Shown: positions 1-58,578 of the stretch, piece after piece
How positions within the stretch are numbered: position 1 is the stretch's first letter
How the letters are laid out: each line of letters starts with the position of its first letter
Assembly (NCBI GenBank): GCA_965649825.1
Contig: OZ287694.1
Coordinates: 1,885,192 to 1,949,191, forward strand
Length of the DNA stretch: 64,000 nt
DNA from: Penicillus capitatus
Lineage: Eukaryota > Plantae > Chlorophyta
Direction of reading: 5' to 3'
The notes under the pieces: model-generated
Database searches by the model: none
The model's input: only the letters and a program-made list of their open reading frames with translations
What the model was told of the DNA's origin: nothing
Translations under genes and position numbers: made by a program

Positions 1-184
1 GTTAGACGCTGGATTCGGAGTGTCTAAGGCGTGTTGCGAGGCATCACTCAGGTGGCGCTGATGACCTCCACACCTGGCTCCGAACTTTGCGCTCCGCCGC
101 ACGCTTAAGACATACGGCTCCACTGCGCTAATGCCACGCCGCCTTCGGGTGACGCGTCACTGGTTCAGTGGGGAGGGTGGGCTT

Positions 185-285
185 GGGGTTATCCTAGCCA
201 ATCCGGATCTTTCCGGATCGCGTCGAGGGTTTTGGTGCTTCGACGTGAAGGGGTCTGACGAGACGGGTGGCTCCGTCGAAACCCT
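185..285 (+). ncRNA. Hammerhead ribozyme A (type III topology, branched stem I), copy 1
   Basis: GGGGUU/AUCCU (185-195) ... GGGGU-CUGACGA-G-ACGG-GUGGCU-CCGU-C-GAAA-CCC. Stem III is ACCC:GGGU and stem I is AUCCU:GGGGU, enclosing two hairpins. AGCCA after stem I is complementary to loop-2 UGGCU. Predicted cut 190/191. Confidence 0.7.
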
Positions 286-464
286 TAGGTCTTCTGTTGA
301 CGTGTCGTCCGTACCGCGCGCGCTCGAATTACGCGTTCAATTCTCGCTCTCCGTGTTGGATCTCGGCCGATGTCCAGCGCACGGGTAGATCTGCCGACAT
401 CGTCCGCGGGTCTTTTTCCTCCGCCGATTCGATGTCGCGTTCGTTCGCGCTGCGGCGCGGGAAA

Positions 465-535
465 GGGGTCTGATGAGACGGATGGCGCCGTCGAAACCGC
501 AGAGTGCTTCGTTGCATTCGGCGGTCACCCCAGCC
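465..535 (+). ncRNA. Hammerhead ribozyme B (type I), copy 1
   Basis: GGGGU-CUGAUGA-G-ACGG-AUGGCG-CCGU-C-GAAA-CCGC-a-GAGUGC-uucguu-GCAUUC-g-GCGG-UC/ACCCC-AGCC. All core nucleotides and three helices present. Predicted cut 526/527. Confidence 0.92.
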
Positions 536-3444
536 AGTCGTTTTTTTCTTTCTGTCTCTTTTTCGCCTATCTATATCTATGTTTCTGCCTACGTGCGTTA
601 ACACTAACTGACCTTTACAGCCGATGGCAAGGCGATCTGCATGTATGTATGTATGTACACATGCTCCCCGCTCGGCTTTAAAGAAGAATTCTTCGCGCTG
701 TGTCTCTCACTCGTTCGTCCTCCTGCCGTTAAGTGATCTGACCCTAGTTTGTTCAACGTGATGGTAGACTTGGAGGCGACGCATTTTTTTGGTATTGGAA
801 AGTGGACCTTTGTACCTACCTAGACCAGAGTGGCAGAGCAGCAGTCCTCTGGATTTCTGATGAGTGGTTCTTAACAGCACATCAACCTTGTCGATCATCA
901 GGACGCCGACGTTGTGCGACACCGCCGTTGCAACGTATAGCGAGCCCGTGAAGCTTTCGAGTGACCTCATTCTCACAACGTGAACCGGCGATTCTCAAGC
1001 TTGCCGTTGCAACGGCGGACTCCATCGCCCGACCGCTTCATTCGCTCTTGCATCAAGAGAATATCACTCCTCAGCGCTGTCGCCGTCTCCACGTCAAACT
1101 ACGTTTTAAACGGAGCGTTCCGTTCTCCTTCAGGTGGGTGGGTGGGTGTCCTGCAAACAGACGTTGGCTATACACAGTGAGTGACCAGAAGCCCGAGCAA
1201 ATGCAAGACGGCCCTTGGCCTGTCAAATCAGAAGCGCGCTGTTCTCTCTTTGCTTTCCAGTCGTCACACCACAACAGACAGAACCGGTGGCCATGCTGAG
1301 ACTGTCCTGTTTTAACATCCCATCTTCTAGGCGAGACGTTGCGGACCGGAATCGAACTTCTAGGTGCTCTCCCCTGAGCACTGCTGCATTAGGAGTGAAG
1401 ATCACCGGGAGTGTCGCGATATAAACCTATGACATGCATTACCGTTTTGGAGTCCCCGATTCAAGGGACATTGATCGCATCAGAACGCGCCGAAGGACTG
1501 AAGGAAGGTGTTTGTCGACGAACGCATAACACAGCTTTCTGGTGCAAGATCCGACGAGATCGCAGCTGCATGGGTTTATGTCCCACGAGATTCGAAAGGC
1601 CGACACACTCGGTGTGAAGCTAGCCGCCGCCAATCGAGAACAACGAATTCAAGAACTTCGATTCCTCACTTCCAACGAAACCTCTTTCTTCCCGCCGCCG
1701 ACCCTCTTCTGAAGTGTTCCACACTTGGTCGTCGCTCACCGGATTGTTTATTCATATGCCGGCGCTTTCAGATGGAGCAAGATCTGTCACAGCTTCGTGC
1801 GACTGTTGTCCTCGTTCCCGCAGATCATCCCAGTGCGCGTCGTCGCCAGTCATGGTCGCATGGATGCGCCAAACGTGCGAAGTCTACAAGAAGACAAATG
1901 AATGAATGACTCGGCACGCCGTCGGAATACACGACGTTTAAGTAAGTAACAGGCGAGAACAGTTCATTATCTACGAGAAAAGCTACGCGGAGCGAGCGAC
2001 TAGTGCTTTCCCAACTCCGTGCATCGATCGCCCTCAGCAACGTCGTCGCGCCAATGTCCTTTCAGATCGTCCACGTAGCGCCGGTGACACACTAGACGAC
2101 AGCAACTCACCATGTCCGACGAGCCAGACAGAGACTATAAAAATTTACTCCTCTGATGACGATACGAGCAGCTAGCTGGATTCAGACAAGTGAGATTAGA
2201 AAACTCCGTCGCCGCAAAAACACAGACAGATGTTGTGTCAACGTTTCCGATTAGGCAAGGAAGCTTTTGGATGCGCTCGTATCGTGGAAGTAGCAGTTGT
2301 GTGTGCCCTGACGACGATAAGACAGACAGACAGACTTTGGTAGATGCGACCTGAACTTATGCCAAGTGTGGCAGCTTCTGGTTGCGTAAGATTGTCTGTT
2401 TCTCGTGACTGAAGCGTCAGTCAGGTCGTAACAAGGAAGCCTGTCGCGCGGAGTATGAGGCGGTTTTTGATGGAATACAAAGGTTACACAATTGACAACT
2501 TTTCAATGAACAAAACGGAGCGAAAAGGTTACTTACAATCAACTTGTACAGCAAACAGAAATAAAGTAACTCGTAAGCAAAGAAGCAGAACAATTCTAAT
2601 CTAATCTTCTTCTTCCCCTTTTACTTAACCCTTCAGGTGCGACAGCTCGGACCGTCGTCTAAGCCGCCGTGCGTGGTCGGTCTTGAAGTGAGAGGTGAAC
2701 GGGAGAGCCGGTGCGTCATAGGTGTTCTCTGAAAGACTTATGCCAGAATGGATAGAGACATTCACGAAGAGGTCACAGTACTCGGCCAGTCTTCCGAACC
2801 CCCCCAAATGCGTTCGGTAGTTTCTCAAATCTCTCTCCGCGCCTGCTCGAAGAGAACGAACAGCTCTCTAGCCGGTGAGGCAGAGGGAGAGGGGGTTCCA
2901 CTGTTAGTTATGACTCTCCCATCCAGTGGGTTTGAAGAGTGGGAGAGAGGACCACTGGCCGAAGAGGAGTCCAGTGGGATCATCGGATAAACGCTGCTGC
3001 GTTCTTTTGCACATTTGCTGTGATTGTTCTGTCGTAAACCGCTCGTTCGGTGACGACTGTTGCCATTGTAGGCTGCTTTCGCATGTTTACACTTTGACAG
3101 TTTTCACGCTGGTAGATCTGTTCCGTCACCTCCGTTAATGCCCGTCACATTCTCCCCGACACGTGTATGTACGGATAAAAAACCGATCGATAAACGCGCG
3201 CGCAAAGCACGAAGCTATGAAGAACATAGAGTACTATTACATACCATTGTTTCGGTTCGACTCATAAGGATCGAACTCAACTTGACAGTGAAACAACCAG
3301 AGCAGTGAATGCGAATGGAGACGGCCGGTTCGACTTATGGCTGTCGAACCCGTCTTGCCAGAGAAACAGCCAGAGCAGTGAATGCGAATGAAGACAGCCG
3401 GTTCGACTTATGGCTGTCGAACCCATCTTGCCAGAGAAACAGCC

Positions 3445-4116
3445 AGGGTCAGCCCCGGCGGAAAAACAGCCGGTTCGACTTATAGAGAGGTCGAACTCTT
3501 GTTGCTCAGACGATGCGTGTGCTTGCCAGAAAAACAGGCCAGGGTCAGCCCCGGCGGAAAAACAGCCGGTTCGACTTATAGAGAGGTCGAACTCTTGTTG
3601 CTCAGACGATGCGTGTGCTTGCCAGAAAAACATGCCAGGGTCAGCCCCGGCGGAAAAACAGCCGGTTCGACTTATAGAGAGGTCGAACTCTTGTTGCTCA
3701 GACGATGCGTGTGCTTGCCAGAAAAACAGGCCAGGGTCAGCCCCGGCGGAAAAACAGCCGGTTCGACTTATAGAGAGGTCGAACTCTTGTTGCTCAGACG
3801 ATGCGTGTGCTTGCCAGAAAAACAGGCCAGGGTCAGCCCCGGCGGAAAAACAGCCGGTTCGACTTATAGAGAGGTCGAACTCTTGTTGCTCAGACGATGC
3901 GTGTGCTTGCCAGAAAAACATGCCAGGGTCAGCCCCGGCGGAAAAACAGCCGGTTCGACTTATAGAGAGGTCGAACTCTTGTTGCTCAGACGATGCGTGT
4001 GCTTGCCAGAAAAACATGCCAGGGTCAGCCCCGGCGGAAAAACAGCCGGTTCGACTTATAGAGAGGTCGAACTCTTGTTGCTCAGACGATGCGTGTGCTT
4101 GCCAGAAAAACAGGCC
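3445..4116. repeat. 96-bp tandem repeat, 7 units, each with two hairpins
   Basis: AGGGTC recurs at 3445, 3541, 3637 ... 4021. Each unit contains CCGGC-n9-GCCGG and GTTCGAC-n10-GTCGAAC. Confidence 0.95.
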
Positions 4117-4222
4117 AAGGACAGGACAGAGGACACCGCGCCCATGCAACCAAGGACAGGACAGAGGACACCGCGCCCATGCAACCAAGGACAGGACAGA
4201 GGACACCGCGCCCATGCAACCA
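4117..4222. repeat. Short array of GGACAGAGGACACCGCGCCCATGCAACC units (about 3)
   Basis: Direct repeats; the same motif is expanded to 20 units at 44611-45210. Confidence 0.9.
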
Positions 4223-5092
4223 ATCAGTGTAATAGTATACCTTCTCTTCCGTTGCCCACGACGATCAGAACAATCGAAACCTTGCCTCAATGGGCGCTTT
4301 CCAGTTTCTTCGACATCCCAAAGCAAACGAGACAAACCTGTTCCCTTGGCGATCTAACCGTCCGATCACGCTACCTTTCCCGCATCCCCTACACCAATTC
4401 CCAGCGCCTCCGCACTATACCTACCGCCGCATGCAAACCCCGTGGAGCGAAATAACATACCGTCTAGTCTACCACTCTCCCTTGTGGGCACCAACGTCTT
4501 CCTCAAGCTGACGACGAAGCAGAGCTTCGTGGCGAAACCGACGCAAGAGATTCACGAACCACGGCTCTTGAGAAAAGAATCCACGCAGAACACCCGAAGC
4601 GTGCTCGCAGTGGCAACGGAAAAACAGAAAAGAAAAAACAACAAGCCTACGACACACACCGACAACGGAAAGACAGCGCTGGCGCGGGAAAGAAAAAACC
4701 ACGTTTCCTACGAAGACACTCAAGGAAAGAGAAAAACGCGCGTCGAGCCATAGAGATCGCAGAACTCAAGGTCAGCATGCAGTCAACCGAGGTACGTGGC
4801 CCCACGGCAATCCTCGTTCCCAAGCCGTCATCGCCCCACGCTCTCCACTATTCGCACACCTAGGTCGTCGTGCTTTGGCCTCACCGCATACTCGCCATCC
4901 ATTTTCTCTCCTTCATCACATATCACCGGTAAACGCATTAGATCGCCAATTCCTTATCCTCTCATGTTGACCCTTGACGTTATCTTCTCTCCTCACCCGC
5001 CTGTCTCGACAAGATTCCGCCTTCCATATAAAAATGCCCGATACAACCGCTGACGAAACCTAATCCGCACACCGGACCGCTTTAACGGTCAT

Positions 5093-6046
5093 CTACCTTC
5101 TCGACCTCTTCCGGGAGCCCCCCAGTGAACCCCCTGTCCCCCCGGCAACCTTCCGTTTCGAATCGTTTTCTTTCAACATCTCCATCCGTTCTCTTCGAAC
5201 CCGCGTGTCCCGAAGATTGTAGCGGCGCTTTGCATTTCTCTCCCTTGTTAATTCTTCTTCGTACGACGTGTCCCGACGGCGGCGTCTAGAACCGCTGCCC
5301 TCAGACTCCTCTTTCGTTTCCATGACAACGTCGGGCTGCGCCTCCGGCACCGCGTCCCCTTCTTCGTCCGTGACAACGTCGGGCTGCGCCTCCGGCACCG
5401 CGTTCCCTTCTTCGTCCGCGACAACGTCGGGCTGCGCCTCCGGCACCGCGTCCCCTTCTTCGTCCGCGACAACGTCGGGCTGCGCCTCCGGCACCGCGTC
5501 CCCTTCTTCGTCAATGTCGAGTTCCACGACAACTTCCTCCACCTCCACGCCCACGATATTGTCTTCTCCGTACGTAAGTTCAGTGAGGACGAACAGCATC
5601 ATGTCCTTTGCCAATTCGTTCTGTCTTTGGCGAACCTCTGTCGGAGGGGCGCTGAGCTGTGACCTTAGATGTCTTACAAACATGGCAACCCTGAAGAACA
5701 TAAATTCATCGTCGTGGTTGCCAAGTTGAGTTGCCAAAGCATTTCCCAGAACGTTCGCAACGTCAGCCCATGTGCGAATATGCCCTTCTTCGCCTTCATT
5801 GGTATTCCCGACCAGGAACCGCACCCCCATTTGGCACAAAACGGTCCGAACGGCGGCGAATGCACCCGGTGTCCACGTGTGTAGTGGCCCCACGTCTGCC
5901 CCGAAGATGTCGGCCGCGACCATAAGTCCAAAATGGCTAGAGACCGCTGCGTGAAAAATGTTGTATTGTTCACGCTGAACATCTTGCTGCAAACCGCATA
6001 AGACGTGGTTTGTGAGAACCTGTACTGCCAACGTAAACGAACCCAT
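5093..6046 (-). CDS. Orphan intronless protein (317 aa): predicted helical N-terminal domain, acidic 16-aa repeat x4, basic C-terminus with KRRYNLR
   Basis: ATG at 6046 (MGSFTLAV) aligns with MGSFAPAV of paralog 46129-47148. Conserved blocks include RTWAxVAxVLxNALA and FRVAMFVRxLRxQL. A TATA-like and a CCAAT element lie upstream. Confidence 0.8.
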   Translation of the reverse strand: MGSFTLAVQVLTNHVLCGLQQDVQREQYNIFHAAVSSHFGLMVAADIFGADVGPLHTWTPGAFAAVRTVLCQMGVRFLVGNTNEGEEGHIRTWADVANVLGNALATQLGNHDDEFMFFRVAMFVRHLRSQLSAPPTEVRQRQNELAKDMMLFVLTELTYGEDNIVGVEVEEVVVELDIDEEGDAVPEAQPDVVADEEGDAVPEAQPDVVADEEGNAVPEAQPDVVTDEEGDAVPEAQPDVVMETKEESEGSGSRRRRRDTSYEEELTRERNAKRRYNLRDTRVRRERMEMLKENDSKRKVAGGTGGSLGGSRKRSRR

Positions 6047-6179
6047 CACCGTTACTTTTGAGGCAATATGAAAACCGAACACCAATATTTTTCGTGCAAA
6101 GTGGCAAGAAGCACAAAGTCCGTAAGAACACCAGAGAACCTTGAAACAACAAAACAACCTTCACCGTACTGCGCTCGTA

Positions 6180-6262
6180 ATCATATATATACAAGCGTAA
6201 TGAATTAATGGAAAATTAAGTCAACCTATGGTTAGGTTTCCGAACTCGCATCGCCATTGGTT
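6180..6262 (-). promoter_or_regulatory. Putative Pol II promoter of the orphan ORF
   Basis: Minus-strand TATATATA at about 6184-6191 and CCAAT at about 6256-6260. A homologous region with CCAAT lies upstream of paralog 46129-47148, and part of it is tandemly duplicated at 6310-6350. Confidence 0.5.
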
Positions 6263-6849
6263 AGATCGACGAATCGTTCAAGCTGATTAATTAATGCAAA
6301 GAATAGCTAAATCTACGGTTAGGTTTCCGAACTCGCATCGCGATTGGCTGACTCGATGAGGGAGGCGACACCACGGCGGACGGCACAAATGAAGCAAACA
6401 AAACGTTTGGAGTGCATACCAAGTTTAAGGGAGTGTGGCTACTTGTTGATTGAGTCGATTTGTGACCCGACACCCCTGACAACTTACACGTAATGTCCTT
6501 GAATCTCTAACAATTTTGACCTGTGTTCAATACCGAACGTCAACAAGATCCTTCATACTAGCTCCTGAACTTAACAGTTCTGTCACGCAATCGTTTTAAA
6601 GGGATTGCATAGCTGCCCATGGGGTCCTCAAGTCAAAGAAAGTGGTTCAATCTTCTGACTTTGTAACCGATCTTCAAGGGAAATCATAGTTATGTTGTTG
6701 TCCGGTCCTGCTTTTTCAGATATAAATAATGATTGTGCAACAAAGGGTCATCCATAATACAAAGGAAGAAAAAATGCACCAGACCCAAAGAATTTGAACT
6801 GGTATCATGTAAGGCAGCGCCGCCGACAACCAAGAAGTCGACAGACTCG

Positions 6850-7810
6850 TAAATTTCTCAGTTTCCTTAGTCGGTCGGACGTTGAGTGATAGCCAGTCTC
6901 TCCTCCATCTGCCTCTGAAGAGATGCCATCATCGTCTCATTCCTGGTCGCCATTGTTTTAATCTGATCTTCCATTCTCTGCTGTGGCGCGCTGAACTTTT
7001 TCCAGACCTCGTCTATTCTTCCTGTCACGTAATGCCCTTCCTGGAGGCCTGGTCACCATCGTGGCGTCTGGGGGTCCGGGGGAAGGAATGTCCTCTGGAA
7101 GCGGCGCTACTAGGTCGACACTGGCGTCTTCAGAGCTTCGCTGCGAGCCGTAGATTTCCGCGTTGTCGATGATCCGCTCTGCCCCTCGCTGTTGCAAATC
7201 GGAGGTCTCCGCCTGACGAAATCTGTTAAGGCGGTCTTCGAAGTTAGGGTAGAGAGGCGCGTAGAGAATAGTCGCGCGTTGAACGTTGTGCTCCGCGTCG
7301 TGATCCGCCAGGATGCAGCGAAACAAGAAGTCTTACAACAATCGTAAAGGCAAAAGTCCGTGCATACCCCCCTTTTATACCGCCCTGGTGATGCGACTCC
7401 ACGAAGAAGTGAGTCATCGCGCCACCTGAGCCAGAGAAGATCGTCCCAAGACACAGTCGACAAGACATGCAGCGCCCCTGCGCACAGCTGACCCCCACAG
7501 AACAAGACAACGTCACATCGCTCGGCGACACTTCCTTCCCTGTTCCTGCACAACAAGTGTCACTACGGATCTTCTGCTCTTCGAGGGCTCACAGTTTTCT
7601 GTCGATTCTGTAGTAGAGGGAATTCCGTGTGACAACGATGTTGGCTCGTGCCTTGATTTGCGTTCATTCGCCGTCATCTGTACGCGCTCGTAATCATCGG
7701 ACAACTCGTCACCATCAGATTGAAGATCACGATCATAGGAACGAAAAGGAACACGATGTACAACAGAGATTGCCACACAGACAGGAATTTGTCTTCCGAA
7801 TAGAAAGCTT
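6850..7810 (-). pseudogene. TRP-channel C-terminal fragment (S6 + coiled coil), frameshifted and interrupted by a solo LTR
   Basis: Reads WQSLLYIVFLFVPMIVIFNLMV / LSDDYERVQ (S6-like, one frameshift). Beyond the LTR it reads RIDEVWKKFSAPQQRMEDQIKTM...LQRQMEERL. Resembles the S6 and C-terminal exons of the three TRP genes. Confidence 0.6.
7023..7530 (-). mobile_element. Solo LTR (508 bp), TGTCGCC family
   Basis: Minus strand starts TGTCGCCGAGCGATGTGACG and ends CGTGACA. 5-bp TSD CTTCC at 7018-7022 and 7531-7535. Homologous to 47731-48251. Confidence 0.9.
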
Positions 7811-8279
7811 GTGAAGCAAAGAGCAACTCAGTAGGGGAGACACACAGGAGATGCTTACGTCGGCTTCACTGTTCCCAATGGTCGAGAAGAACAGGGCTTC
7901 TGCGATACGTATGGTGGAATGACAGCCGTGTAGATCCTGGGGAATGTCGTCCAGTTTCCTAAAAAAAGAGTACGGAAGGCCATCGAAAACCAGATGTGGT
8001 TGTCAAGAGCAGAAGTGTGAACGGCACAATGCTGTCTAAGAGATTCGCCATAGGAATGATCAGAGGCCCGAACAACTCAAAGGGTTGGCAGTACTGCAAC
8101 ATCTCGGTAGTAAAAGGTCAACCCATCGGCACAGTAGAAACAAAAGCTGAAACGGTCTTAACTCGTCCACGCCTTAAAAGGCGTTCGTCGAGCTCGCGCC
8201 GAGTCTTGTGCCGCGTCATCTGAAGAACGTTCAGACAATGATGTTCTGTTTCTTGCGTCTGACAGCGACGGCGCATCAC

Positions 8280-8560: not shown

Positions 8561-9127
8561 CAGGTGTTGTCGGAGATTCGGAAAGCTTGTGGCGACAAAG
8601 ACTCTGACGTGCGCAAGAGCGCGATGTTAGCCATCTGCAGAACCGTTGAGGCAGCACCGGACCTCTCGGACGAGTTGCTGCCAACGCTTCAGAAGGGGTT
8701 CTGCGACAAACACTCCGACGTGCGCTCCAGTGCGATGGAGGCCTTTGGCAGTATCGCAAAATCGAGGCCGCATATCGCAGGCGAATTACTGCCGGTGCTT
8801 CAAGAAGGTTGCGTCGACGAACACTCCAACGTGCGCTGGAGGGCTAGGAAAATCCTAAACGGCATTGACGTTGATCAGATTATGCATTCGACTATCCCTC
8901 TTACTTCTGCGTATAGATGGGGCCTATTGCTAATTCTTACAAGGAATATATTTACTCTCGACTATCCTTCCAAGTCCAAAAAAGTTTCTCTTCTATCGCA
9001 TAGAATTTCTTCCGAAAGAATCGGAGTGTTCGACAGGGAAGACATTAACAATTTCCTTATGTATTTGAGAAAAGAACTCGATGAAAGGTTTTCCGGATTG
9101 TCTGATTATCTGAAAACAAAAGATTAA
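8553..9127 (+). CDS. HEAT/ARM-type repeat protein, terminal exon or fragment
   Basis: Three ~38-aa repeats: DKDSDVRKSA, DKHSDVRSSA, DEHSNVRWRA. No ATG of its own; upstream exons not resolved. Confidence 0.7.
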
Positions 9128-11026
9128 CGCAGATGAATGGCGTTCACGTTGAAAATCTACAACTGAAATCCTATTAGGATGGTGTACTTATCGCATCTTG
9201 GTGTCATACGTAACTTTGCTTTATTGTTGCGGCTAGTTTCCTTTTTTACTAGTCTTTGGAATAGAACGAGCATCTATCTCAGTAATCTCGATTCCGTATA
9301 CTCAAATTAATTGGGATGGCTTGTTTGGTGTGTTGCAACATGAATTACGTGCTTTAGCAGACCGATTTGTTTACTCAAAGGACTCTGCTGTTTGTTCTTA
9401 TTCGTACCGATTTTGTCGGAGTTGGCAAAATCATCTGACATTGGAAACTATCGCCGAGTTTCCGACTAAATCACCAACACATCTCAGGAATTGGAAAAGA
9501 GCGTACGTATTCTTGTGCTTTTTGTGAACTGTGCGTCGACATTAATTTCACACTCTGACAAACCTTCGTTCAAAAAACTCAACACGATGATCGACCCATG
9601 TAATTGCTGACTCTGACGATTTCATTATGTTCGAGGACTCATTGCTCAAATTGGTCGTGCCTTGGTCACGCTTCTATCCCACCCTAATCGCCGATCATCG
9701 CGGCTGATTCCTCCACGTGTAGAATTCGTTAATCGAGTTTGCATGGTGTAGACTAGCGTTACGGTTCGTCCATTCTCGGCGACGGTCATAGAGAAACCAC
9801 TACTCGAAAATCTCTCAAGGTTAATCGGTCGATGCTATCGACCCGGTGATGAAAGTATACATGTGTGCCCCCAGATGTCTTGAGGCGATCGTTACAGATC
9901 AAATTATGAGTCCTTAAACTCCATGGCCCAGAAAGCCCGAAATGACCTGGTCCAGACGGTCTTCTGCACATGCCGTACCTTCATGCAGATCTGCCTCGTT
10001 TCATTTGCATAGAAGAAGCACGACGTGCATAGGAGAAGGGTGGACTCGACGAGACGTTCATTCGCGACACTGACAACACGAGAAACCGTGCCGTCATGCA
10101 GCTCAGAGTGTGTTGGTTCAGATAACGGCATCATAGACCGGATGGGTATATAGCTGCGCCGGCTGCCAACGGACATTTCGCGAATGTCGTGCCGGATTCT
10201 GAAGACCAGGCAGCCCGTTGCACGAGAACAGCGGTAAATGAGACATCGAGGAGGGCGTTCTGTGTGCTGTCTGTCCATCAGCCTTCTGGACGGGGAAGTG
10301 GTTTGCTGACGCCGCATCGTTCGTCGAGGATGCGCCCGTCGCCAGAGGAACAGCTGTCATGGACAAGGCAAGAAGCGTCCATTTCCGCCTCCTCGTGACC
10401 TTGAATGTTGCGCAGGCGACGTGTTCATTTTGACGAAGTCGATCACCTGCAACTACGGGGTTCTATTCTCGCAGAGATCTTTCACTGGTTGCCGTGGACA
10501 AAGCAAACGCGAGTCCCTCCTTTCTCGCATACGAGACATTCTCCGTTGCCGAATGTAGGTCGTAGCATAAGCGAGAAATGGAACCGAGCGACGGCATCTT
10601 CGCGCCCGGGCGGCCGACTTAAACCTTGCGAAGAAAAGGTTGCGTCCATCCCGCTTATGCAGTGACCGTACAAAGCGGTGGACTGCGTTTCATCTCTCAG
10701 AGAGACAGCCTCGCTGCGTGCTGTGAAGCACCCTCCAAGGCAGTCACATCGTGTCGAATGCGTGCACGAGAATCATCAGCAAGTTTTTCATGCAACGCCA
10801 GCTGTCGAGTGGCAGGCAATGGATACGATCGAGTTGGACAATGTGTTCGTCAGCAAACGAGGCAGTGCCGAATCCGGACACGTCGCTTCGAGTTTGCTGT
10901 CTGGATTGAGAACGTGAATTCCAGCTGCATGGTATAAATTCGACCATACCTCCGGACCACTGCCATTTCCCTTTACGCGCTGTACCATCTATCTCTTCGA
11001 GGTTCTTTTCACTCCGTTTAAACATC

Positions 11027-17683: not shown

Positions 17684-18299
17684 GTTCATCACAGGAGGGT
17701 CGCGTCGCCGGTGCAGTTGTGCCTTGTGATGATTTGCGTGCATTGAACGACAGTGGATCTGTAGGAATGTTGCAGAGGATTCCCTGTCGTACAGCAAAAA
17801 TCGCTGATTTACTTGAATGGCAAATTAAACAGTCGTCTCCGTACATTGATGGTCGACACATCCGCCGTGACAACTTGTGCAGGCCCTTGTCAGCAACCAT
17901 ACATTAGGTGAAGAGTGGCCTATACTCGTTCGCGGCCGTGAAACATGTGCCCATCGCGTATCCTTACTTTGGACACTCATCATAAGGTGCATCACGTCGG
18001 AGAGGAGGTATCTGTCGACGGCGATTGTGTACAGAAGACCATTTCCTTCGTCTTTCATTTCGGATTCGGTGATCACCAGAGTGACGTGTCAGGCGCCAGA
18101 TATCATGAGTATTAGTAGCTGTCGTGCAGTGGACAATAGAGACCAAGCTATCGCTTCATGCGGAGAAGGAAGCACTGTCCAACGTCGCCAAAAAAAACAG
18201 AAGATCTTAACAATGCTGAAGACACGAAGGAATGAGAGAAACAACAAACGAAGGTGCGTTTGGCTTTATATCCTCTCGCAACCCGTCCTCCAACGTCAC

Positions 18300-37304: not shown

Positions 37305-38351
37305 TTAGGTCATCGGGTACATATCGGACGCCTTCTCATCCACTACTTCATCGTCTGCTTCTGAAGTGTACTTGAGATGACCGGAGAAGATTGTAATCGG
37401 ACCATACTTCCCAACAGCTTCCTGGACTTTAAAATGCGAGCCCGGATAGACGTCGACCTTTACTCTTTCCGAACGACTCTGATGAAACGCGCTTCGTTCC
37501 ACCGTCGACCAATCGAAATGAATACTGCTGCTGATCTTGAGCTGAAAAATTCTTCCGAAACCTGCTGACGCACTTACAGACGTAGAGAAAGACCCCGCTC
37601 TCGTCGACTCTCTTTCCAGATTCGTGCCTCTTGCGTATTCCAATTCGACTCCTATTATCGATTTGCCAGCCTTGTTGTCAAACTCCGTGATGGTGACCCA
37701 CTTATCAGACGCTTCCCATTCTTTGTCGCCTTCTTTCCACCCGACAAATCGATTGCGGCCTTGAGTCTTTGATTTCCAGCTACCGCAGTAGAGCACACTG
37801 TTGGTCCAAAGGAAAATAAAATGGTACGGCGCCCTGGCTCTGCGAATCATGAGATTGTCGTTATTCTCGTCGAGATAAAGATGGAAACGTTCCCAGGTGT
37901 GGATCTCTCCCCTTCCTTCGACATCGCCTTCGTCTTCGCAACACAACCATTGCTGAGTTTTGGTGTTTTTGATAGCAAAGACTCCATCGTCGACTATATA
38001 AAGTTCAAATCGATGCGCCTCTTCACAATTCTCTCCGTCGGCGCGGAACCTTCCGCTTCCCGAACGCGCATCGTGACGCACAAACTTCAAGTTTGTGCCG
38101 AGGAGGGCGATGTACCGCGTTCCGACACTGACGCCGTCATTTCCCGGCCCCACTTGAAAACGCCACAGCTGGTCGGTGTTCGTCACTCGGACGGTAGAAG
38201 GATTCTTAACGCTTCGCGTCGGACGCCGTAGCTGGTTGGGGTTCGTCGCTTGGACGGTAGAAGTATTCTTGACACTTCTTGCAGAACGGACCTCGGTTGC
38301 GACTGCCGTTTCAGTAAACAGCAGCAACAATGCGACAGATGTGAAGGACAT
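37305..38351 (-). CDS. Secreted protein (348 aa): fascin-like beta-trefoil plus aerolysin/ETX-MTX2-like pore-forming domain
   Basis: True start MSFTSVALLLLFTETAVA (signal peptide) at 38351, then two 21-aa repeats. Fascin-like motifs (FAIKNTKTQQWLCCEDEGDVEGRGEIHTWERFHL). Alternating Ser/Thr-rich hairpin TRAGSFSTSVSASAGFGRIFQLKISSSIHFDWST flanked by beta strands. Intronless. Domain calls are by pattern recognition only. Confidence 0.65.
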   Translation of the reverse strand: MSFTSVALLLLFTETAVATEVRSARSVKNTSTVQATNPNQLRRPTRSVKNPSTVRVTNTDQLWRFQVGPGNDGVSVGTRYIALLGTNLKFVRHDARSGSGRFRADGENCEEAHRFELYIVDDGVFAIKNTKTQQWLCCEDEGDVEGRGEIHTWERFHLYLDENNDNLMIRRARAPYHFIFLWTNSVLYCGSWKSKTQGRNRFVGWKEGDKEWEASDKWVTITEFDNKAGKSIIGVELEYARGTNLERESTRAGSFSTSVSASAGFGRIFQLKISSSIHFDWSTVERSAFHQSRSERVKVDVYPGSHFKVQEAVGKYGPITIFSGHLKYTSEADDEVVDEKASDMYPMT

Positions 38352-38848: not shown

Positions 38849-38915
38849 GGCTAGGGTGACTGCTCAGTCGAGTGACCGAACAGTTTCGACGGCGCCACCC
38901 GTCTCATCAGACCCC
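38849..38915 (-). ncRNA. Hammerhead ribozyme C (type I), copy 1
   Basis: Minus strand: GGGGU-CUGAUGA-G-ACGG-GUGGCG-CCGU-C-GAA-ACUGUUCGGUC-acuc-GACUGAGCAGU-C/ACCCU-AGCC. 11-bp stem III, 5-bp stem I. Predicted cut between 38858 and 38857. Confidence 0.93.
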
Positions 38916-39016
38916 TTAAGAGTTTTTGCCGATTTAGCGCTATCCAGTCCCGCCACGAGGAGGCACGGCTCGACGTTGCGTTGGCAAACGCACCGCCGTT
39001 GGGACCACATTTTTGT

Positions 39017-47447: not shown

Positions 47448-47716
47448 TGTCGCCGGTCAGGCGAGCAGAAAACGATTCACAGCGGAAGACTTCTTACAAG
47501 TGATCGGAGCAAGGTCCTGACCGGCTCAAATCGCCGATTAAGTATGTGCATGTTGACAAGACTTCCCTAGGCAGATGACTAATCCTGCTGCCAGAACCAC
47601 AGAACAAGACCTCAAACACACTTAAACCTCAACTGACAAGACATTCAACGCCCCCTGTGCGCATGACCCCCTCCGCAGCAAGACAGTCACATCGCCAAAG
47701 GAAAATCTTGGCGACA
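47448..47716 (-). mobile_element. Short LTR (269 bp), TGTCGCC family
   Basis: Minus strand TGTCGCCAAGATTTTCCTTTGGCGATGTGAC ... GAAGTCTTCCGCTGTGAATCGTTTTC...GGCGACA. The 3' end matches the LTR end at 55225-55272. No clean TSD. Confidence 0.75.
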
Positions 47717-47718
47717 GT

Positions 47719-48911
47719 TGTCGCCAGGATTGTCGCCAAGCGATGTGACGTTGTCTTGTTTCGTGGGGGTCAGCTGTGCGCAGGGGCGCTGCATGTCTTG
47801 TCGACTGTGTCTTGGGACGAGTTTATCTGGTTCACGTGGCGCGATGACTCACTCTTTCGTGGAGTCGCATCACCAGGGCCGCATAAAGGGGGAAGAATGG
47901 ACGGACTTTTGTTCTTACGCTCTTACGTTTCTTGTTGTAAGACCTTCTGTTTCTTTTGCATCCTGGCCGATCACAACGCGGAGCATAACGTGCAGCGCGC
48001 GACCATCCTCTACGCGCCTCTCTACCCCACCTTCGAAGACCGCCTTAACCGGTTTCGCCAAGCAGAAACCTCCGACTTGGAACAGCGAGGAGCTGAGCGA
48101 GTCATCAACAACGCCGAGATATACGGTTCGCAGCGGAGCTCAGAAGACGCTAGTGTTGATTTAGTAGCTCCGCGCCCAGAAGATATACCATCCCCCGGAC
48201 CCTCAGAAGCCACGATGGTGACCAGATCTCCAGGACTGATAATACGCGACAAGGATCGCCCACGATTATGGCAAAGATGACTGTTTTGATCGTGGCGAGG
48301 TGACTGCCTCGTTTGAAACGGGCTCACTTCGTCAAGGGACACTTGGGGTCTTGTCAGAGGGGACCTTGTGCCGCGAAAGGGTCCTTTTCTCTGGCTCTGG
48401 TGATCGGTAGAATCGTCTGCCTAGAAGGTCGCATCACTTGGACCGAATAAAAGGCTTAGAATTCGCCATTTGTCTGTCTCTCTTTGACTTTGTCTTTGTA
48501 ACACCTTTTGTTGACTACGCTGTCAGCCTTGTGTCCGTCACTCTGGCCGACGACGAACATAACGTTCGACGAGCGACGGTCCCGTACGCGCCACTTTATC
48601 CAACGTTCCATGAGTCCCTGGATAGCTTTCGCCGAGGCGAACACTCAGAGCTTATTCAGAGGGGTGCTGAACGCGTGGTTCACAACGTTGGAGTCTACGA
48701 CACTCGACGAAGCTCCGAAGACGGAAGCGTTAACCTAGTAGCCGTTCACCCAGCGAACATTCCCTCGGCAGGCCCTCAGGAGCAATCTCTAGACAACGAA
48801 GTCCGACCAAATCCCCCAGTCGGCCACGTAGGTCTATCGAATCAATCAGAAAGCAACATAAACAACCACGAATATCAGTGGAAAAACACTTTCCGACCAT
48901 TTGTTCACTAA
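47719..48911 (+). mobile_element. Diverged LTR-family remnant interrupted by a solo LTR; carries a third homolog of the LTR-encoded peptide
   Basis: Starts TGTCGCCAGGAT and resumes after the nested LTR with family motifs (GTGACTGCCTCGTTT, TTTTCTCTGG, TCGCATCAC). ORF LADDEHNVRRATVPYAPLYPTF...RSSEDGSVNLVA runs to a stop at 48911. Confidence 0.65.
47731..48251 (+). mobile_element. Solo LTR (521 bp), TGTCGCC family
   Basis: TGTCGCCAAGCGATGTGACG...CGCGACA with 5-bp TSD AGGAT at 47726-47730 and 48252-48256. Confidence 0.92.
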
Positions 48912-52593: not shown

Positions 52594-55428
52594 TTTGCTT
52601 TCTCGTCTGTCGGTCTGTCTGAGAAAACGTGTCGTCAAGTGCGAGAAAAGACGAACAATGAACGCGTTCCGTCGATGAGTCTGACGGACGACGCGGCATC
52701 CGTTTATTCGCCATCATCTCATGTGTACGGCCATTACTTCATGTGCCAAGATCACTTTGCTTGCTAGTTATTCTCTTGTTACGCTAACGGAATCTCCCTG
52801 CGTCTGAATCTTTAGAAAGTCGTTCGCCGAGCAACCACGCCGCGCGAGACTGTTCCGCTGTGTCTCGCGTGCGATCTTCGCTCGTCAAGGAGCACAACGC
52901 GTTGCCTTTGTGCGAGGTAATGCCCTCCTACTGTGTCTAACGTCTTGAGGGATGTCAGAAGGCCGCGACGGTCGTAGCCAATGCTACAATAGCCGATTCC
53001 CTGCGTCTCTGTCTGCCACACATCTCCTGGCCGATGGTCCTGGCCATGCGGCCGTGTGCGGTGACCAACCTCTCCCTGAGGACTCTGCTCTCCGTTTACT
53101 AAACTGACAGCAGTTCCGCTGCCGTCGTCTTGCAGAGGCGGGAGACGAGTGCAGCCTTCTAGACCAAGGCGTGGGGAAGACATCGAAAAGTGCGGCGCTC
53201 TGTCCTACAAACACCTTCTCGTAAGCGACGTGCAAAAAGGAGGTGGTCTACGTAGGTCTCGACGATGAGAAGAAGCGACTGCTCTTCTTCCATAAAGGTC
53301 GAGCCACTGCGAAGAGTCTGAAGATTCCTGGCAGCACGTTGGAGAATCGTTTTCGAATCCAAACTATTGCGGAATAGTGTAATGTCGGGATCTACGCTCA
53401 TTCGAAGAAGTCTACCATCCCCATCCATCCCTGTGGACACGATTGATCTGGCACTCCAGAAAGGTACTGTCTTTGTTTTATGGAGAAACCATCATGCACT
53501 AATATTTCCATCCACCTGCCTCCTCATCTTGTCAGGCTATGTCTCTTCGTATCCATCTCTCTTTTGAATTCCAGCGGCTTCGGCGAATCGCTGACATACA
53601 CGGTACACGATATTGGCGTATGATCGAAACAGGCTGTTCTCTGTGCACACGGCATTTCCAACTGTCGAAAGAGAACAAGTCACCTGACAGCAGTGATCAT
53701 CACACGTTGGGGGGTGTCGCTGTCAGATGCGATTCCACTGTCTTGACATCCAGGAACCGTCCAGCCGGTGACAGGTAAACGCTGCAAGGTCCAGGTTGTC
53801 AGAAGGTCTTTCCTCTGCCCTGGAATCTTCTTTGTCGTCACGTCTTCGACGCTGTTCAGTCGATGGTGCCGATGTGGATGTTCAAACAACACAAGTGGCT
53901 GTTTCTGTGAGATTAGGAAGAATCAGATCTCTATGTGATGGATCGTCTGTGGATGCACAAAGTGAGAATGTGTGGAACTAGTGTCTACATCCAAGATCTG
54001 ACATATGTGAAATGGCTCGATCTTACCCCGGCTTTGGTGCTGGGCCAATCCATCTTCACATAACTAACTCTCTACGAAGCGCAGAAGACATGGATGCTGC
54101 GCTCTTACACAGTTCTGAGACCGACATGTGCGGCTCTCGCAATCGCTGCCGTATCTGGCAGACTTCTTCGCTCTTTAAGCACTTGCCATAAAGATGGAAA
54201 CATCTTAACATGGAAGCATAGACAGGTTACTGACAAGACAAACTGCTACAGGTCCAAAAGAGAAGCAGGTAAGTTTCAAATGCCCGGATGCTGTCCGTCA
54301 TGGATCAGGAAGGACGACTCGGTGGTGAAGACCTGTTTAGGTCATCGGGTACATATCGGACGCCTTCTCATCCACTACTTCATCGTCTGCTTCTGAAGTG
54401 TACTTGAGATGACCGGAGAAGATTGTAATTGGACCATACTTCTTAACAGCTTCCTGAACTTTAAAATGCGAGCCCGGATAGACGTCGACCTTTACTCTTT
54501 CCGAACGACTCTGATGAAACGCGCTTCGTTCCACCGTCGACCAATCGAAATGAATACTGCTGCTGATCTTGAGCTGAAAAATTCTTCCGAAACCTGCTGA
54601 CGCACCTACAGACGTAGAGAAAGACCCCGCTCTCGTCGACTCTCTTTCCAGATTCGTGCCTCTTGCGTATTCCAATTCGACTCCTATTATCGATTTGCCA
54701 GCCTTGTTGTCAAACTCCGTGATGGTGACCCACTTATCAGACGCTTCCCATTCCTTGTCGCCTTCTTTCCACCCGACAAATCGATTGCGGCCTTGAGTCT
54801 TTGATTTCCAGCTACCGCAGTAGAGCACACTGTTGGTCCAAAGGAAAATAAAATGGTACGGCGCCCTGGCTCTGCGAATCATGAGATTGTCGTTATTCTC
54901 GTCGAGATAAAGATGGAAACGTTCCCAGGTGTGGATCTCTCCCCCTTCCTTCGACATCGCCTTCGTCTTCGCAACACAACCATTGCTGAGTTTTGGTGTT
55001 TTTGATAGCAAAGACTCCATCGTCGACTATATAAAGTGTCGCCGAGCGATGTGACGCTGCCTCGTTTCTGAGAAGGCCACATCCTGGGGGGGTCTTGGTT
55101 GAATCACCCAAGGCCATTTTCTCTGGTTTTGAGGCTAGGGTGATTCACCTGCCTCGTCGAGTCGCATCACCATGCGAGTATATAACGCGCAGTTAGAACC
55201 ACTGAACGCCTTGCTCTGTAACTTGTGAAGTCTTCCGCTGTTATCGTTTTCGTTCGGCGCCTCCGCGCGACATGGTTTCGGAGCTGAGACAACGCTCCTT
55301 CGTTTGATCTCCGTCTTGGTGACGTTGCGCGTGTGCTGTGTGCACTAAAGCGCCTTACTTTGTGGAAGCTGAGTCCTGTCTAGATACTTTCTAGACATAT
55401 CGAGGAATTTCAAGAGTCAGTAGCAAGG

Positions 55429-57422
55429 ATGAGTCGAGGGCGACGAGAAAGAAGAACGGAGCAAGGTCAAAGGGGGGAATGGTTCACCGGGTATTACGGC
55501 ACCATGGCATACGGACCGAGCTTGCTCGGCATTCTTGGGGAAGACAAGGGATTATACCCTGGTGCGCTATCTTATCATAAGGCGTGGACGTGGGTTAACG
55601 TGGGCGACCAGCGCCTTGAAAGTTTTTTGTTTGACGCGGCCGAACTGGTTGCTTTCATCAGCTACGTTTGTCCGAGGCTGCAAGAAAGACGTGAACTGCA
55701 GAGGACGACAGAACGGTTGCGTGAGGAAAGAGAGAGGCTACGCCAGCAGGTGGCGACCCTCGAAGCAGAAAAGGAAGGATTACGAGCGACGCTCAAGATG
55801 TCTGAGGCAAGTGCTCTTGCAAGGGGAGTGTCGGTCGGGGTCTTACAGCAAGAGGTAGCCGAGGCGACAGCAGAAAGCGAGCGGCTGTTGTCGTGTTCGT
55901 CAACGGACGGGTTAACGACGAAGGCGTAAAAGATTACAAAGACTGTTCTGGCAATCAGTGTTCGGTCTTTATACGCGTCGATGTGACATTTGACGCGTCC
56001 CGTGTCAGCTGCACGAAGGTGGACAGCTGTCCACTGACATGTGCCCACCCCCTTTCCGTTGTGCAGACTCCGAATAATGTGAACGGAACACATTTCACGA
56101 CAGTCGGGATGTCATCAGGCTGGCCAGGAGTCGAGCCAGGGCCATCGTCACGTGGCTTCTCCCTCTACGGCCCATTCGCCGCAGCTTTGTAGCTCTTACG
56201 TCTCTGAGACTTTAACGCCGACTCTGGAAATTCGAACCGTACTTCACAGCGACAACACGTCCGTGGTGACCCAGATAGAAAACGTAAACACGGACAAAGT
56301 AACAACGAACGTAAACACAACAATGCGCAACAGCACGCTTATCGCAGCGTGAAACTGAAACGCAGCAACTCGGACGGTGGAACTGAAAGGCAGCAACTCG
56401 GACGGTGGAACTGAAAGGCAGCAACTCGGACGGTGGAACTGAAACGCAGCAACTCGGACGGTGGAACTGAAACGCAGCAGCTCGGACGGTGGAACTGAAA
56501 CGCAGCAGCTCGGACGGTGGAACTGAAACGCAGCAGCTCGGACGGTGGAACGAACTACAGACTGCAGGTGGTAGGTAAAACGCTGTCACCACGGTCGTGT
56601 CTTGGAAAGTCTTCAGTCTTCGATGACGGGATTCTATCGCCGGAATCTTTGTCGCTCCGAAACCATGTCGTGTTCGTCAACGGACGGGTTAACGACGAAG
56701 GCGTAAAAGATTACAAAGACTGTTCTGGCAATCAGTGTTCGGTCTTTATACGCGTCGATGTGACATTTGACGCGTCCCGTGTCAGCTGCACGAAGGTGGA
56801 CAGCTGTCCACTGACACTGTCAGGGCTTAACACGGGGCTGCGGCGAGGCATCGTCGAGGCGCAACAAGGCGCAAGCGAGGCACGTGAAGAAGCCTCCTCT
56901 CTACAGAAGAAACTTGAAGAGACTGAGACGGCCTTTACAGAGGCTAAAGAACATTTGATTTCGGCACCTGATTTGGTGTCTAGTCTTCGGTCGCTGACCG
57001 ACGCGGTGAAGGCAGTGCATGACGAAGTTCGGACGAGCAGTGAGAGGACAGTTGAGGCGGTGGCGAGAAGACCACCAGATGGACGAAGAAGCATGAAGAC
57101 GCTGCAGCAGATGAGGCGTGTGCTGCACGATATCAAGCGGTATCCGCGACGACAACGAAGAGGAAGGGCAGCCGGCGCAGCTGACGATGGCGGGGGTGCC
57201 ACGAAGCGCGGCCGAATCTGCTATATCTGCCGGTGCAAAGGGCACATGGCTAAGGACTGTCCGCGAGTGCGGACTACAGATACGGTTGCGTCAGCGGATC
57301 CGACGGTATCGGATACGCAGCCGAGATCCGACGTCGCAGAAGAGTTGAATGCGGCATCAGCGTACTCAGGGCTCAACATCTTGTCCTTTTTCCGGCGCAA
57401 TTTCACCTCAGGGATCGACTGA
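55429..57422 (+). CDS. Coiled-coil + CCHC zinc-knuckle (Gag-like) ORF, 353 aa once the nested TRIM is removed
   Basis: Joining 55429-55888 to 56821-57422 gives one frame (…AESERL-SGLNTGLRRG…). Long heptad-like region and CYICRCKGHMAKDC. Confidence 0.85.
55889..56816 (-). mobile_element. TRIM-like mini LTR element (928 bp) nested in the pol-less element
   Basis: 151-bp direct repeats at 55889-56039 and 56666-56816, identical by eye, TG...CA. 4-bp TSD CTGT. Minus-strand PBS TGGTTTCGGAGC (56665-56654) and PPT GGAAAGGGGGTGGG (about 56057-56044). No coding capacity evident. Confidence 0.92.
56351..56550. repeat. 28-bp tandem repeat x7 inside the TRIM
   Basis: GGAACTGAAA(C/G)GCAGCA(A/G)CTCGGACGGT with period 28. 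Confidence 0.95.
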
Positions 57423-58578
57423 ATGTTAGTGATTGTTTTCGTGGGGGCTTCTTAACTGTTTTCGGAGTTGGCGGGAAGCGTGGTGTCGCCGAGCGATGTG
57501 ACGCTGCCTCGTTTCTGAGAAGGCCACATCCTGGGGGGGGTCTTGGTTGAATCACCCAAGGCCATTTTCTCTGGTTTTGAGGCTAGGGTGATTCACCTGC
57601 CTCGTCGAGTCGCATCACCATGCGAGTATATAACGCGCAGTTAGAACCACTGAACGCCTTGCTCTGTAACTTGTGAAGTCTTCCGCTGTTATCGTTTTCG
57701 TTCGGCGCCTCCGCGCGACATAAAGTTCAAATCGATGCGCCTCTTCACAATTCTCTCCGTCGGCGCGGAACCTTCCGCTTCCCGAACGCGCATCGTGACG
57801 CACAAACTTCAAGTTTGTGCCGAGGAGGGCGATGTACCGCGTTCCGACACTGACGCCGTCATTTCCCGGCCCCACTTGAAAACGCCACAGCTGGTCGGTG
57901 TTCGTCACTCGGACGGTAGAAGGATTCTTAACGCTTCGCGTCGGACGCCATAGCTGGTTGGGGTTCGTCGCTTGGACGGTAGAAGTATTCTTGACACTTC
58001 TTGCAGAACGGACCTCGGTTGCGACTGCCGTTTCAGTAAACAGCAGCAACAATGCGACAGATGTGAAGGACATCTCCGAAGCGGGCGGCAGGAAATCAAG
58101 GGCCTGCACAAGACAGTCACATCGCCGTGGAAATCTTGGCGACAAACAGTGACAGTTGAATCAGGATTCATGCCTTCTGTCGTGCGAAAGACACGGCGAG
58201 TCGAACTAACGCGCGTAGTGGAAACGAAACAAAACGGAAACACGCAAAGAATTGATTAAATTACACAGCCCGGCCGTTTCCCGGGATGCTGTCGCCCGTC
58301 ACTTTAAACAATGAACGAACGCGCAAGGCGCGTCAGAGAATCTTACTTCTTCGGTGTGTCGAGACTCGTATGGCGTAGAACGTCCTTCGTCTTCCGTCCT
58401 CGCGTTGGTATGGAGATCGTCGCAGAGTCTTCTCACGTCTCCTCGAGTCCATCCCGTCCACTGTAGCTGGTTCACGCGAAAAAAAAAACAAAAAAGGCAA
58501 AAGGCAAAAGGCAAAAGGTAGAGAAAGATGATGAATGGATGAAGCAACCGACGCAGCCTTCTGCGTCAGCAGCTTTAG

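Follow-up and report, generated by a model that had tools for sequence, protein, structure and literature searches.

The GAG gene of Ty1, a Ty1/copia retrotransposon of Saccharomyces cerevisiae, opens in the 5′ long terminal repeat (LTR), and its frame continues across the end of the LTR and the primer-binding site (PBS); it has an AUG start, about a dozen codons within the LTR, and integrase positioned before reverse transcriptase. The accessory open reading frames (ORFs) sag of mouse mammary tumor virus and nef of primate lentiviruses are located in the unique 3′ region (U3) of the 3′ LTR, have their own AUG, and end inside the LTR. The host genes FGF2 and MYC contain a CUG in strong context upstream of the AUG and in frame with it, and leaky scanning results in two isoforms. 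In murine leukemia virus (MLV), as in other gammaretroviruses, an upstream CUG in frame with the AUG of Gag adds about 88 N-terminal residues to glyco-Gag (gPr80gag), which is translated from the same unspliced RNA (PMC3423011). The long form is a type II membrane protein, the unique residues of which are cytosolic (PMC3423011). A 64,000-nucleotide stretch of the genome of the chlorophyte Penicillus capitatus (GenBank assembly GCA_965649825.1, contig OZ287694.1, positions 1,885,192 to 1,949,191 of the forward strand), referred to here as the window, contains solo LTRs of a retrotransposon family in which the LTR almost certainly encodes the N-terminus of Gag, in a frame that reads through the PBS.

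As in Ty1, the Gag frame of this family opens in the 5′ LTR and crosses the PBS; however, it has about 100 LTR codons and no AUG, and belongs to elements with the order reverse transcriptase, RNase H, integrase. It shares with sag and nef the presence of coding sequence in an LTR, but it is positioned downstream of the promoter, supplies the N-terminal part of Gag, and continues beyond the LTR end. Unlike FGF2 and MYC, which are host genes free of LTR and PBS constraints, it is part of a mobile element. The reading favored here, to which a probability of roughly 0.7 is assigned, is that translation would start at an invariant CUG, with leaky scanning to a downstream AUG and the production of two Gag isoforms. 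The family would thereby combine a Gag that opens inside the LTR, as in Ty1, with CUG initiation of the glyco-Gag type. Literature searches returned neither a description of such an element nor any reference to the two unannotated ENA assemblies, ERZ25074695 and ERZ26696514, that contain its relatives.

Two LTRs in the window, copies A and B (Table 1), are homologous end to end, with 83% identity in blastn over 521 nt; in a repeat search of the window they pair as inverted repeats over 308 nt at 82% and 162 nt at 92%. Both start with TGTCGCC and end with (C/T)GACA, and the termini TGTCGCC...(G/C)GCGACA or CGTGACA are common to all copies of the family. A first-pass annotation of the window had described A and B as solo LTRs flanked by target-site duplications (TSDs), and the duplications CTTCC and AGGAT are indeed perfect. 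The 97 codons at 7314-7024 of A and 47960-48250 of B align with zero gaps, and their differences are distributed 11/4/34 over codon positions 1/2/3. The Nei-Gojobori method gives 35.5 synonymous and 13.5 non-synonymous differences, in agreement with the approximately 33 and 12 differing codons counted previously, and corresponds to synonymous (dS) and non-synonymous (dN) divergences of 0.83 and 0.06, with a dN/dS of 0.08. When A and B are aligned with four copies from related contigs, the variable columns are distributed 19/8/65, and the pairwise dN/dS within this clade is 0.07–0.10 at dS of 0.64–1.28; the pattern first noted in two copies is not due to chance. The amino-acid sequence is still conserved where dS is saturated. 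The third, more distant homolog previously noticed at 48540-48911 is genuine, with a tblastn E value of 1e-27 and approximately 55% amino-acid identity. Among the sister lineages L011, L012, and L014, the proportion of non-synonymous differences is 0.22–0.31 in the LTR-encoded extension and 0.28–0.38 in the remaining Gag-protease, and the extension is as constrained as the rest of the protein. Since the copies occupy different sites, the selection acted in active element lineages before insertion rather than on solo LTRs in place. The copies in the window are inert relics.

Seven full-length elements with two coding LTRs are present in related contigs (L011, L012, L013, L014, L016, L017, and L018). 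One of them, L018 of ERZ25074695, is of the LTR type found in the window: its 521-nt LTRs share 86% identity with A and 99.4% with each other. The frame of L018 extends from the CTG over 96 codons of the LTR and across the PBS, read as MVSERG, into a hydrophobic segment; in this copy gag-protease is interrupted by one in-frame stop, and pol by one frameshift. The 5,883-bp element L011 has a pair of 541-nt LTRs with 100% identity and is flanked by the TSD GTCCC. The PBS TGGTTTCGGAGCGAGG directly follows its 5′ LTR, the polypurine tract (PPT) GGGAAGCGTGG precedes its 3′ LTR, and the same PBS and PPT characterize the coding-LTR family. Rfam and tRNA scans of the element loci gave no match, and no tRNA gene is present there that could provide a primer for the PBS. 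Elements L012, L014, L016, and L017 have LTRs of sister types, 545–623 nt long, with pairs that are 100% identical, and L013 of ERZ25074695 has a more diverged extension and 386-nt LTRs, also 100% identical, with a TSD of GATAT. In every element a single phase covers the LTR end and the PBS, the PBS encodes (M/V)VSERG, and 0–2 nt are compensated at the junction. In most lineages the terminal A of the LTR and the TG of the PBS form an ATG, which is the first AUG; in the clade of the window, the first AUG is positioned 12 codons earlier. The earlier proposals that the frame runs open off the LTR end, and that the LTR supplies a long protein N-terminus continuing through the PBS, are therefore borne out: the final base of the LTR opens the codon that the PBS completes, and the continuing ORF is that of Gag-protease.

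The Gag-protease is 663–737 residues long (724 in P0011 and 670 in P0022). After the LTR-encoded peptide, P0011 and P0022 contain MVSERGW, then two hydrophobic segments separated by a coiled coil, and finally a CX2CX4HX4C zinc knuckle and an aspartic protease. Pfam identifies Asp_protease_2 in P0022, and RVT_1, RT_RNaseH, Integrase_H2C2, and rve in pol. The 988-residue Pol of L011, which contains reverse transcriptase, RNase H, and integrase, is in the -1 frame relative to Gag-protease. The order protease, reverse transcriptase, RNase H, integrase is that of Ty3/gypsy (Metaviridae), and the best pol matches outside six ENA clusters are at most 28% identical. The family is a deeply divergent one among LTR retrotransposons, for which the Ty3/gypsy label comes from the domain order and not from a tree. 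The passage of the LTR frame across the PBS into Gag-protease, the domains, and the order of pol can be read directly from the sequence, whereas translation, the transcription start, and the poly(A) site are predictions from it.

Two strongly hydrophobic 19-residue segments approximately 190 residues apart, coiled coils, and a Cys-rich stretch are present in P0011, P0022, P0048, and P0050 (L011-L014). The Gag-protease ends with Q-K-N-stop in P0011, P0022, P0048, P0049, and P0050. At positions 12146-12175 of L011, the Q-K-N-stop lies on an A-AAA-AAC heptamer, and pol is in the -1 frame in both elements checked (L011 and L013). The heptamer is likely to be a programmed -1 frameshift site.

The conserved motifs of the LTR-encoded peptide are R-A-x-(I/V)-P-Y-x-P-L-Y-P-x-F, F-R, Q-R-G-A-E, N, R-S-S-E-D, and then G-P. 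Neither Pfam searches with the three peptides of the window nor a sequence search of the PDB identified a relative. AlphaFold2 predictions reach a mean predicted local distance difference test score (pLDDT) of 58 with a 6-row alignment and 66 with a 52-row alignment, with one confident helix (residues 25-42) and no globular fold. The peptide is positioned directly before the first hydrophobic segment of Gag and may reasonably be regarded as a putative cytosolic tail of a Gag anchored in the membrane. A function of the tail in trafficking or host-factor binding is speculation.

No copy or element has an ATG at the head of the frame, and gene callers start it at TTG or GTG. The homology begins at A-N-N-CTG-GCN-GAY in all copies, as had been observed for three copies in the form CTG-GC(C/G)-GA. 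The CTG is present without exception, together with A at -3 and G at +4, in 10 of 10 diverged lineages, whereas two other invariant leucines are each encoded by four to five different codons and by CTG in one of the 10 lineages. One relative has GTG at the position of the CTG, in the same context. In-frame stops are located upstream of the CTG at distances of 4 codons (L013, intact), 7 (A), 10 (L014), and 14 (L011), which places initiation at or just before the CTG. Farther upstream, indels separate the copies and the frames are not conserved. A conserved TGTAAG motif lies 16–46 nt upstream of the CTG, at a distance of 24, 25, or 26 nt within the closest clade; because of this variable spacing and the differing upstream frames, no AUG supplied from upstream could stay in frame. 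The statement in the first-pass annotation that no ATG lies upstream holds from LTR position ~167 to the CTG, but not for U3, which has ATGs at LTR positions 13, 63, 114, and ~166 in no conserved frame. No ATG occurs from position ~167 to the in-frame ATG at ~472. Cis-splicing from an upstream ATG through the conserved GTAAG was considered and rejected, because no acceptor precedes the conserved frame and the spacing varies. From the two earlier options of a CUG-initiated or a spliced N-terminus, the evidence favors the CUG, which is invariant, has A-3/G+4, and is preceded by stops; splicing is disfavored by the varying position of the TGTAAG motif.

Between the TATA-like box and the first AUG, 303–555 nt are free of ATG in any frame. 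The LTR frame, summed over ten lineages, contains one out-of-frame ATG in 1,015 codons, compared with 2.92 per 100 codons in the control, which consists of the gag-protease and pol sequences located downstream in four elements. Asp, Asn, His, and Tyr codons that precede a codon starting with G end in C or T in a ratio of 72:1, versus 108:124 in the control (Fisher p = 8e-19); before codons that do not start with G, the same codons of the LTR frame use T freely (67:37). The codon-choice effect is detectable in each lineage alone (P = 0.002–0.02). Methionine makes up approximately 2% of the remaining Gag and is absent from the extension, except in the last 12 codons in the clade of the window. 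Protein-level selection together with the purging of AUGs in one region is the prediction of leaky scanning past a weak non-AUG start, and two isoforms are therefore proposed.

The depletion of AUGs is also expected of a plain 5′ leader. If Gag were initiated only at the AUG, the upstream 85–120 codons would be an untranslated leader kept for strand transfer in the repeat and unique 5′ regions (R/U5), for packaging, or for dimerization. The R-U5 leaders of retroelements carry such signals, as documented for Ty1 (PMC6844567), which has palindromes PAL1 and PAL2 in the 5′ untranslated region and PAL3 in the Gag reading frame (PMC6844567). However, a leader of this kind does not account for the 19/8/65 distribution of substitutions and the dN/dS of 0.07–0.10, for amino acids that remain recognizable at saturated synonymous sites, or for a frame that all lineages keep open and in phase with Gag, 0–2 nt being compensated at the LTR/PBS junction. 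Furthermore, folding shows no excess structure near the start. An untranslated leader is thus very unlikely.

Several observations weigh against initiation at the CUG. No stable or conserved hairpin was found downstream of the CTG (z-scores from -0.9 to +1.4). In B, L3b, and L2 (the latter two being copies from contigs L003 and L002), the frame happens to be open far upstream, and B and L1 (from contig L001) have an in-frame ATG beside the TATA box. The CTG position is occupied by I, V, F, or R in a small number of family members. The favorable effect of A-3/G+4 on non-AUG starts is a rule from animals, yeast, and plants, and may not be that of the host. In addition, P0011 and P0022 match no Pfam Gag family and no PDB entry, and since no capsid domain is recognizable, the name Gag is based on position, zinc knuckle, and protease only. 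Finally, the residue preceding the CTG is semi-conserved, mostly as T or I family-wide, so that translation could begin slightly upstream.

The last point also speaks for a different start of the same extension, at a near-cognate codon just upstream (AUC or UUG), by internal entry, or at the AUG of a spliced or trans-spliced leader. An AUC precedes the CTG in the clade of the window and in L013, a TTG is located 5–6 codons upstream in A and L011, and the TGTAAG motif holds an AG that could in principle be an acceptor. By contrast, the CTG alone is common to all lineages, and the preceding codon is ACT or ACC, which are not near-cognate, in half of them. The shifting distance between TGTAAG and CTG, the upstream frames that differ between copies, and the in-frame stops of intact elements also stand against such a start, and the LTRs C and D, described below, are without the AG required by a spliced leader. 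A start of this type is unlikely, although less so than an untranslated leader.

The LTR downstream of the TATA-like box is wholly coding and specifies the first 83–121 residues of Gag-protease. In the proposed mechanism, ribosomes would initiate at the invariant CUG, within some tens of bases of the cap, and many of them would scan past it through the AUG-free part of the LTR to the first AUG, which would be that completed by the PBS in most lineages and the one 12 codons earlier in the clade of the window. A long and a short Gag isoform would result from one RNA. The long isoform would be mostly disordered ahead of the membrane anchor, where it would probably form a cytosolic tail with the motifs PYxPLYP, RGAE, and RRSSED. 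Pol would be reached by a -1 shift at the A-AAA-AAC heptamer.

This arrangement resembles MLV glyco-Gag in its 83–121 upstream codons and invariant CUG, in a leader devoid of AUGs, and in the membrane anchor that adjoins the extension. However, the MLV extension is located in the leader downstream of the PBS and supplies the signal-anchor, whereas the extension described here fills the LTR after the TATA box and reads through the PBS. Unlike in MLV, the hydrophobic anchor follows the AUG, and both isoforms would therefore carry it. The elements also differ from MLV in their Ty3/gypsy gene order, and their translation is predicted from sequence alone. No homology to the gammaretroviral glyco-Gag leader peptide was detected in a profile search of 1.84 billion proteins, in Pfam, or in the PDB; the likeness is one of mechanism, not descent. 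The odds are about even that the system is a full convergent counterpart of glyco-Gag, in which the whole transcribed part of the LTR would be coding, a CUG start would yield two isoforms of a membrane-anchored Gag, R, U5, and PBS would be doubly used, and the disordered tail, which has PPxY/YPxL-like and acidic-cluster motifs, would act as a module for trafficking or budding in a membrane-associated Gag that lacks a capsid domain.

The peptide could also be an exon captured recently from a host gene, or the solo LTRs could have been domesticated to produce a small protein serving the host. The lack of Pfam and PDB matches is compatible with a capture, but nothing specific favors it. An exhaustive profile search of the 1.84 billion proteins identified 46 clusters at 50% identity that carry the LTR peptide. 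Just two of these clusters, P0011 and P0022, are long, and both are Gag-protease proteins with the peptide at residues 6-94; the others are short read-throughs of ~60–240 residues, and those examined (P0001-P0003, P0005, and P0016) lie in LTRs. All 46 clusters are thus short read-throughs or N-termini of Gag-protease, without a host-gene homolog among them. Moreover, the lineages diverged to dS > 1 under selection while located inside LTRs at different insertion sites, so that the selection accompanied the radiation of LTR lineages and does not point to a recent capture. In addition, the examined solo copies have frames that run into arbitrary flanks and acquire different tails. Scans of JGI metagenomes, with the peptide pattern and with an invariant U3 18-mer, gave only chance matches and nothing else that would suggest a host gene. 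Both variants of this explanation are highly improbable. Approximately 40 short database proteins (among P0001-P0047) are gene-caller read-throughs of solo LTRs with arbitrary N- and C-terminal tails.

The additional solo copies were obtained from contigs L001, L002, and L003 of ERZ25074695 by means of three read-through database proteins; a word-indexed protein search with the peptide of the window returned three solo-LTR read-throughs and nothing more. Beyond the window, relatives have been found so far in the two ENA assemblies only. Contig L003, closely related to the window as a paralog or an allele, holds both an ortholog of A (L3a, positions 383-891, 97% identical) and a B-like solo LTR (L3b, positions 9888-10397), which is 95% identical to B but occupies a different site. 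Five independent insertions are available, with a perfect 5-bp TSD in four (A, B, L1, and L3b) and four of five bases matching in L2. Together with the empty target site in the window for the copy on the paralogous contig, they support the identification of these sequences as solo LTRs; no empty site was found for copy A itself. Thirteen of the 14 differences between A and L3a are clustered in the coding part, where the variants match other family members, a pattern suggestive of a gene-conversion tract.

The first ~150 nt of U3 (7381-7530 in A and 47731-47880 in B, with counterparts in L001, L002, L003, and L018) diverge by 5–16%, compared with 43–61% at synonymous sites. This part was considered as coding and rejected, because its differences have no triplet periodicity (10/15/11), and RNAalifold detects almost no covariation in it. 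Candidate explanations for its conservation are promoter or integrase-site constraint, or recombination and homogenization.

Copy B is inserted 12 nt inside an older, diverged LTR, C, which it has severed (47719-47731). No TSD was found for C or for its counterpart D in L003 (~17077-17995). C and D have the same right flank, beginning at the same base and 97–98% identical, while the LTRs are ~59% identical to each other, and the inverted short LTR to the left of C is just 65% identical to its L003 counterpart. This suggests the replacement of LTRs through ectopic conversion or recombination at the C/D site. Other insertions also lie at or near the termini of older LTRs: L3b is positioned at the first base of a TGTCGCC terminus (window positions 38568 and 58290), the L002 copy (~9866-9872) adjoins GCCGACA, and the 3′ LTR of L018 (~7560) is abutted by a short-LTR element. 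They may reflect a target preference or nesting hot spots.

Table 1 Features of the coding-LTR family and its short-LTR relatives in the window.
Feature	Position	Strand	Basis
Solo LTR A, 508 nt	7023..7530	-	Termini TGTCGCC...CGTGACA
TSD of A (CTTCC), right-hand copy in element orientation	7018..7022	.	Perfect 5 bp
TSD of A (CTTCC), left-hand copy in element orientation	7531..7535	.	Perfect 5 bp
Non-coding 5′ part of U3, ~150 nt, strongly conserved	7381..7530	-	Copy divergence
TATA-like box TATAAAA (LTR positions 152-158), presumed LTR promoter	7373..7379	-	Same place in six copies; function putative
Invariant CTG in ATC-CTG-G (A-3, G+4), proposed non-AUG initiation codon	7309..7311	-	Copy alignment
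LTR-encoded frame of A, 96 codons, putative N-terminal extension of Gag-protease	7024..7311	-	Codon pattern; homologous N-termini in P0011, P0022, P0048
First ATG after TATA region, in frame, 12 codons before LTR end, ACG-ATG-G	7057..7059	-	Ends 303-nt stretch free of ATG in all frames
First base of junction codon (last LTR base), completed by PBS in full-length elements	7023	-	Frame
Solo LTR of short-LTR sister lineage, head-to-head with C	47448..47716	-	Homology
LTR C, 5′ piece (starts TGTCGCC), severed by B insertion	47719..47730	+	Sequence
TSD of B (AGGAT)	47726..47730 and 48252-48256	.	Perfect 5 bp
Solo LTR B, 521 nt, nested 12 nt inside LTR C	47731..48251	+	TSD, termini
CTG of B	47963-47965	+	Alignment
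Coding frame of B	47963-48250	+	Alignment
In-frame ATG of B	48215-48217	+	Sequence
LTR C, 3′ piece, diverged family member	48257..48907	+	Homology
CTG of C (ACT-CTG-G)	48543-48545	+	Homology
Homologous frame of C	48543 to stop 48909-48911	+	Homology
Empty target site (ATGCT) for B-like copy of L003	38564..38568; second empty copy 58286-58290	.	Paralogous comparison
Short-LTR non-autonomous relative, 2,685 bp	55037..57721	+	LTRs, TSD, PBS, PPT
Its LTRs, 237-238 nt, 99.6% identical	55037-55273 and 57484-57721	+	Alignment
Its PBS TGGTTTCGGAGC	starts 55274	+	Identical to PBS of full-length coding-LTR elements
Its PPT GGGAAGCGTGG	57473-57483	+	Identical to PPT of full-length coding-LTR elements
Its TSD (TAAAG)	55032-55036 and 57722-57726	.	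Sequence
Its empty target site (TAAAG) in paralogous duplicated unit	38000..38004	.	Paralog comparison

The element at 55037 belongs to a sister lineage with short, non-coding LTRs and the same termini, as had been noticed before; its PBS and PPT match those of the coding-LTR family as well. Its U3 motifs also correspond to those of the family, but the TATA box is followed by ~80 nt and no coding part. The element lacks pol and contains a 301-residue ORF (56517-57419) with a weak zinc-knuckle match. A coiled-coil ORF (55429-55926), a 151-bp internal duplication (55889-56039 = 56666-56816), and a 28-nt tandem array are also present in it. The short LTRs, PBS, PPT, and absence of pol liken it to terminal-repeat retrotransposons in miniature (TRIM) and large retrotransposon derivatives (LARD), and, as in these, its termini, PBS, and PPT are common with an autonomous family that could supply enzymes. 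It differs from TRIM and LARD in keeping the 301-residue ORF, and its LTR is without the coding part. In a tblastn search of the window with Gag and Pol of the family, the LTR peptides were the sole matches, and the interior of the element is therefore not a detectable deletion derivative of the family. The 6 kb between C and the first LTR of the element (48912-55036) was considered as the interior of a larger element and rejected, because its opposite strand carries an ion-transport gene and because the 55037 element comes with a TSD and an empty site of its own.

The window consists of an approximately 20-kb segmental duplication (1-7912, 32159-47450, and 49170-64000), the units of which are 95–98% identical in parts and 72% identical elsewhere. 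It contains many tandem arrays with periods of 96, 48, 34, 30, 29, 28, and 15 nt, a HEAT-repeat fragment at 8564-9124, and the ion-transport gene at 50488-51273 (- strand); Rfam and tRNA scans of the window gave no match. Another, apparently intact Ty3/gypsy element is located at 22668-27950 (- strand), with 342-nt LTRs (22673-23014 and 27604-27945) that are 100% identical and a TSD of ATAAC. It has a single 1,476-residue ORF (23119-27549) that encodes Gag, protease, reverse transcriptase, RNase H, and integrase and matches Retrotrans_gag, and its PBS is different. This element (22673-27945) was considered as the parent of the coding LTRs and rejected, since its LTRs, termini, and PBS differ from theirs.

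Gene callers that require an AUG miss or mis-start the proteins of this family, and its solo LTRs can be mistaken for small genes, as exemplified by P0001-P0003 and about 40 others. LTRs are usually treated as non-coding and masked in annotation, whereas approximately 300 nt of the LTR described here are under selection as strong as that on the rest of Gag. The same bases would also serve as repeat and U5 in strand transfer while staying free of AUG, which is an unusually dense overlap of constraints. The LTR copies in the window flag a deeply divergent family, the pol of which is at most 28% identical to anything else in the searched database, with a membrane-anchored Gag that lacks a recognizable capsid domain. 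If the proposed initiation is correct, the family would provide a clear non-vertebrate example of an AUG-less, CUG-type extension of Gag, which would suggest that dual-isoform Gag arose more than once.

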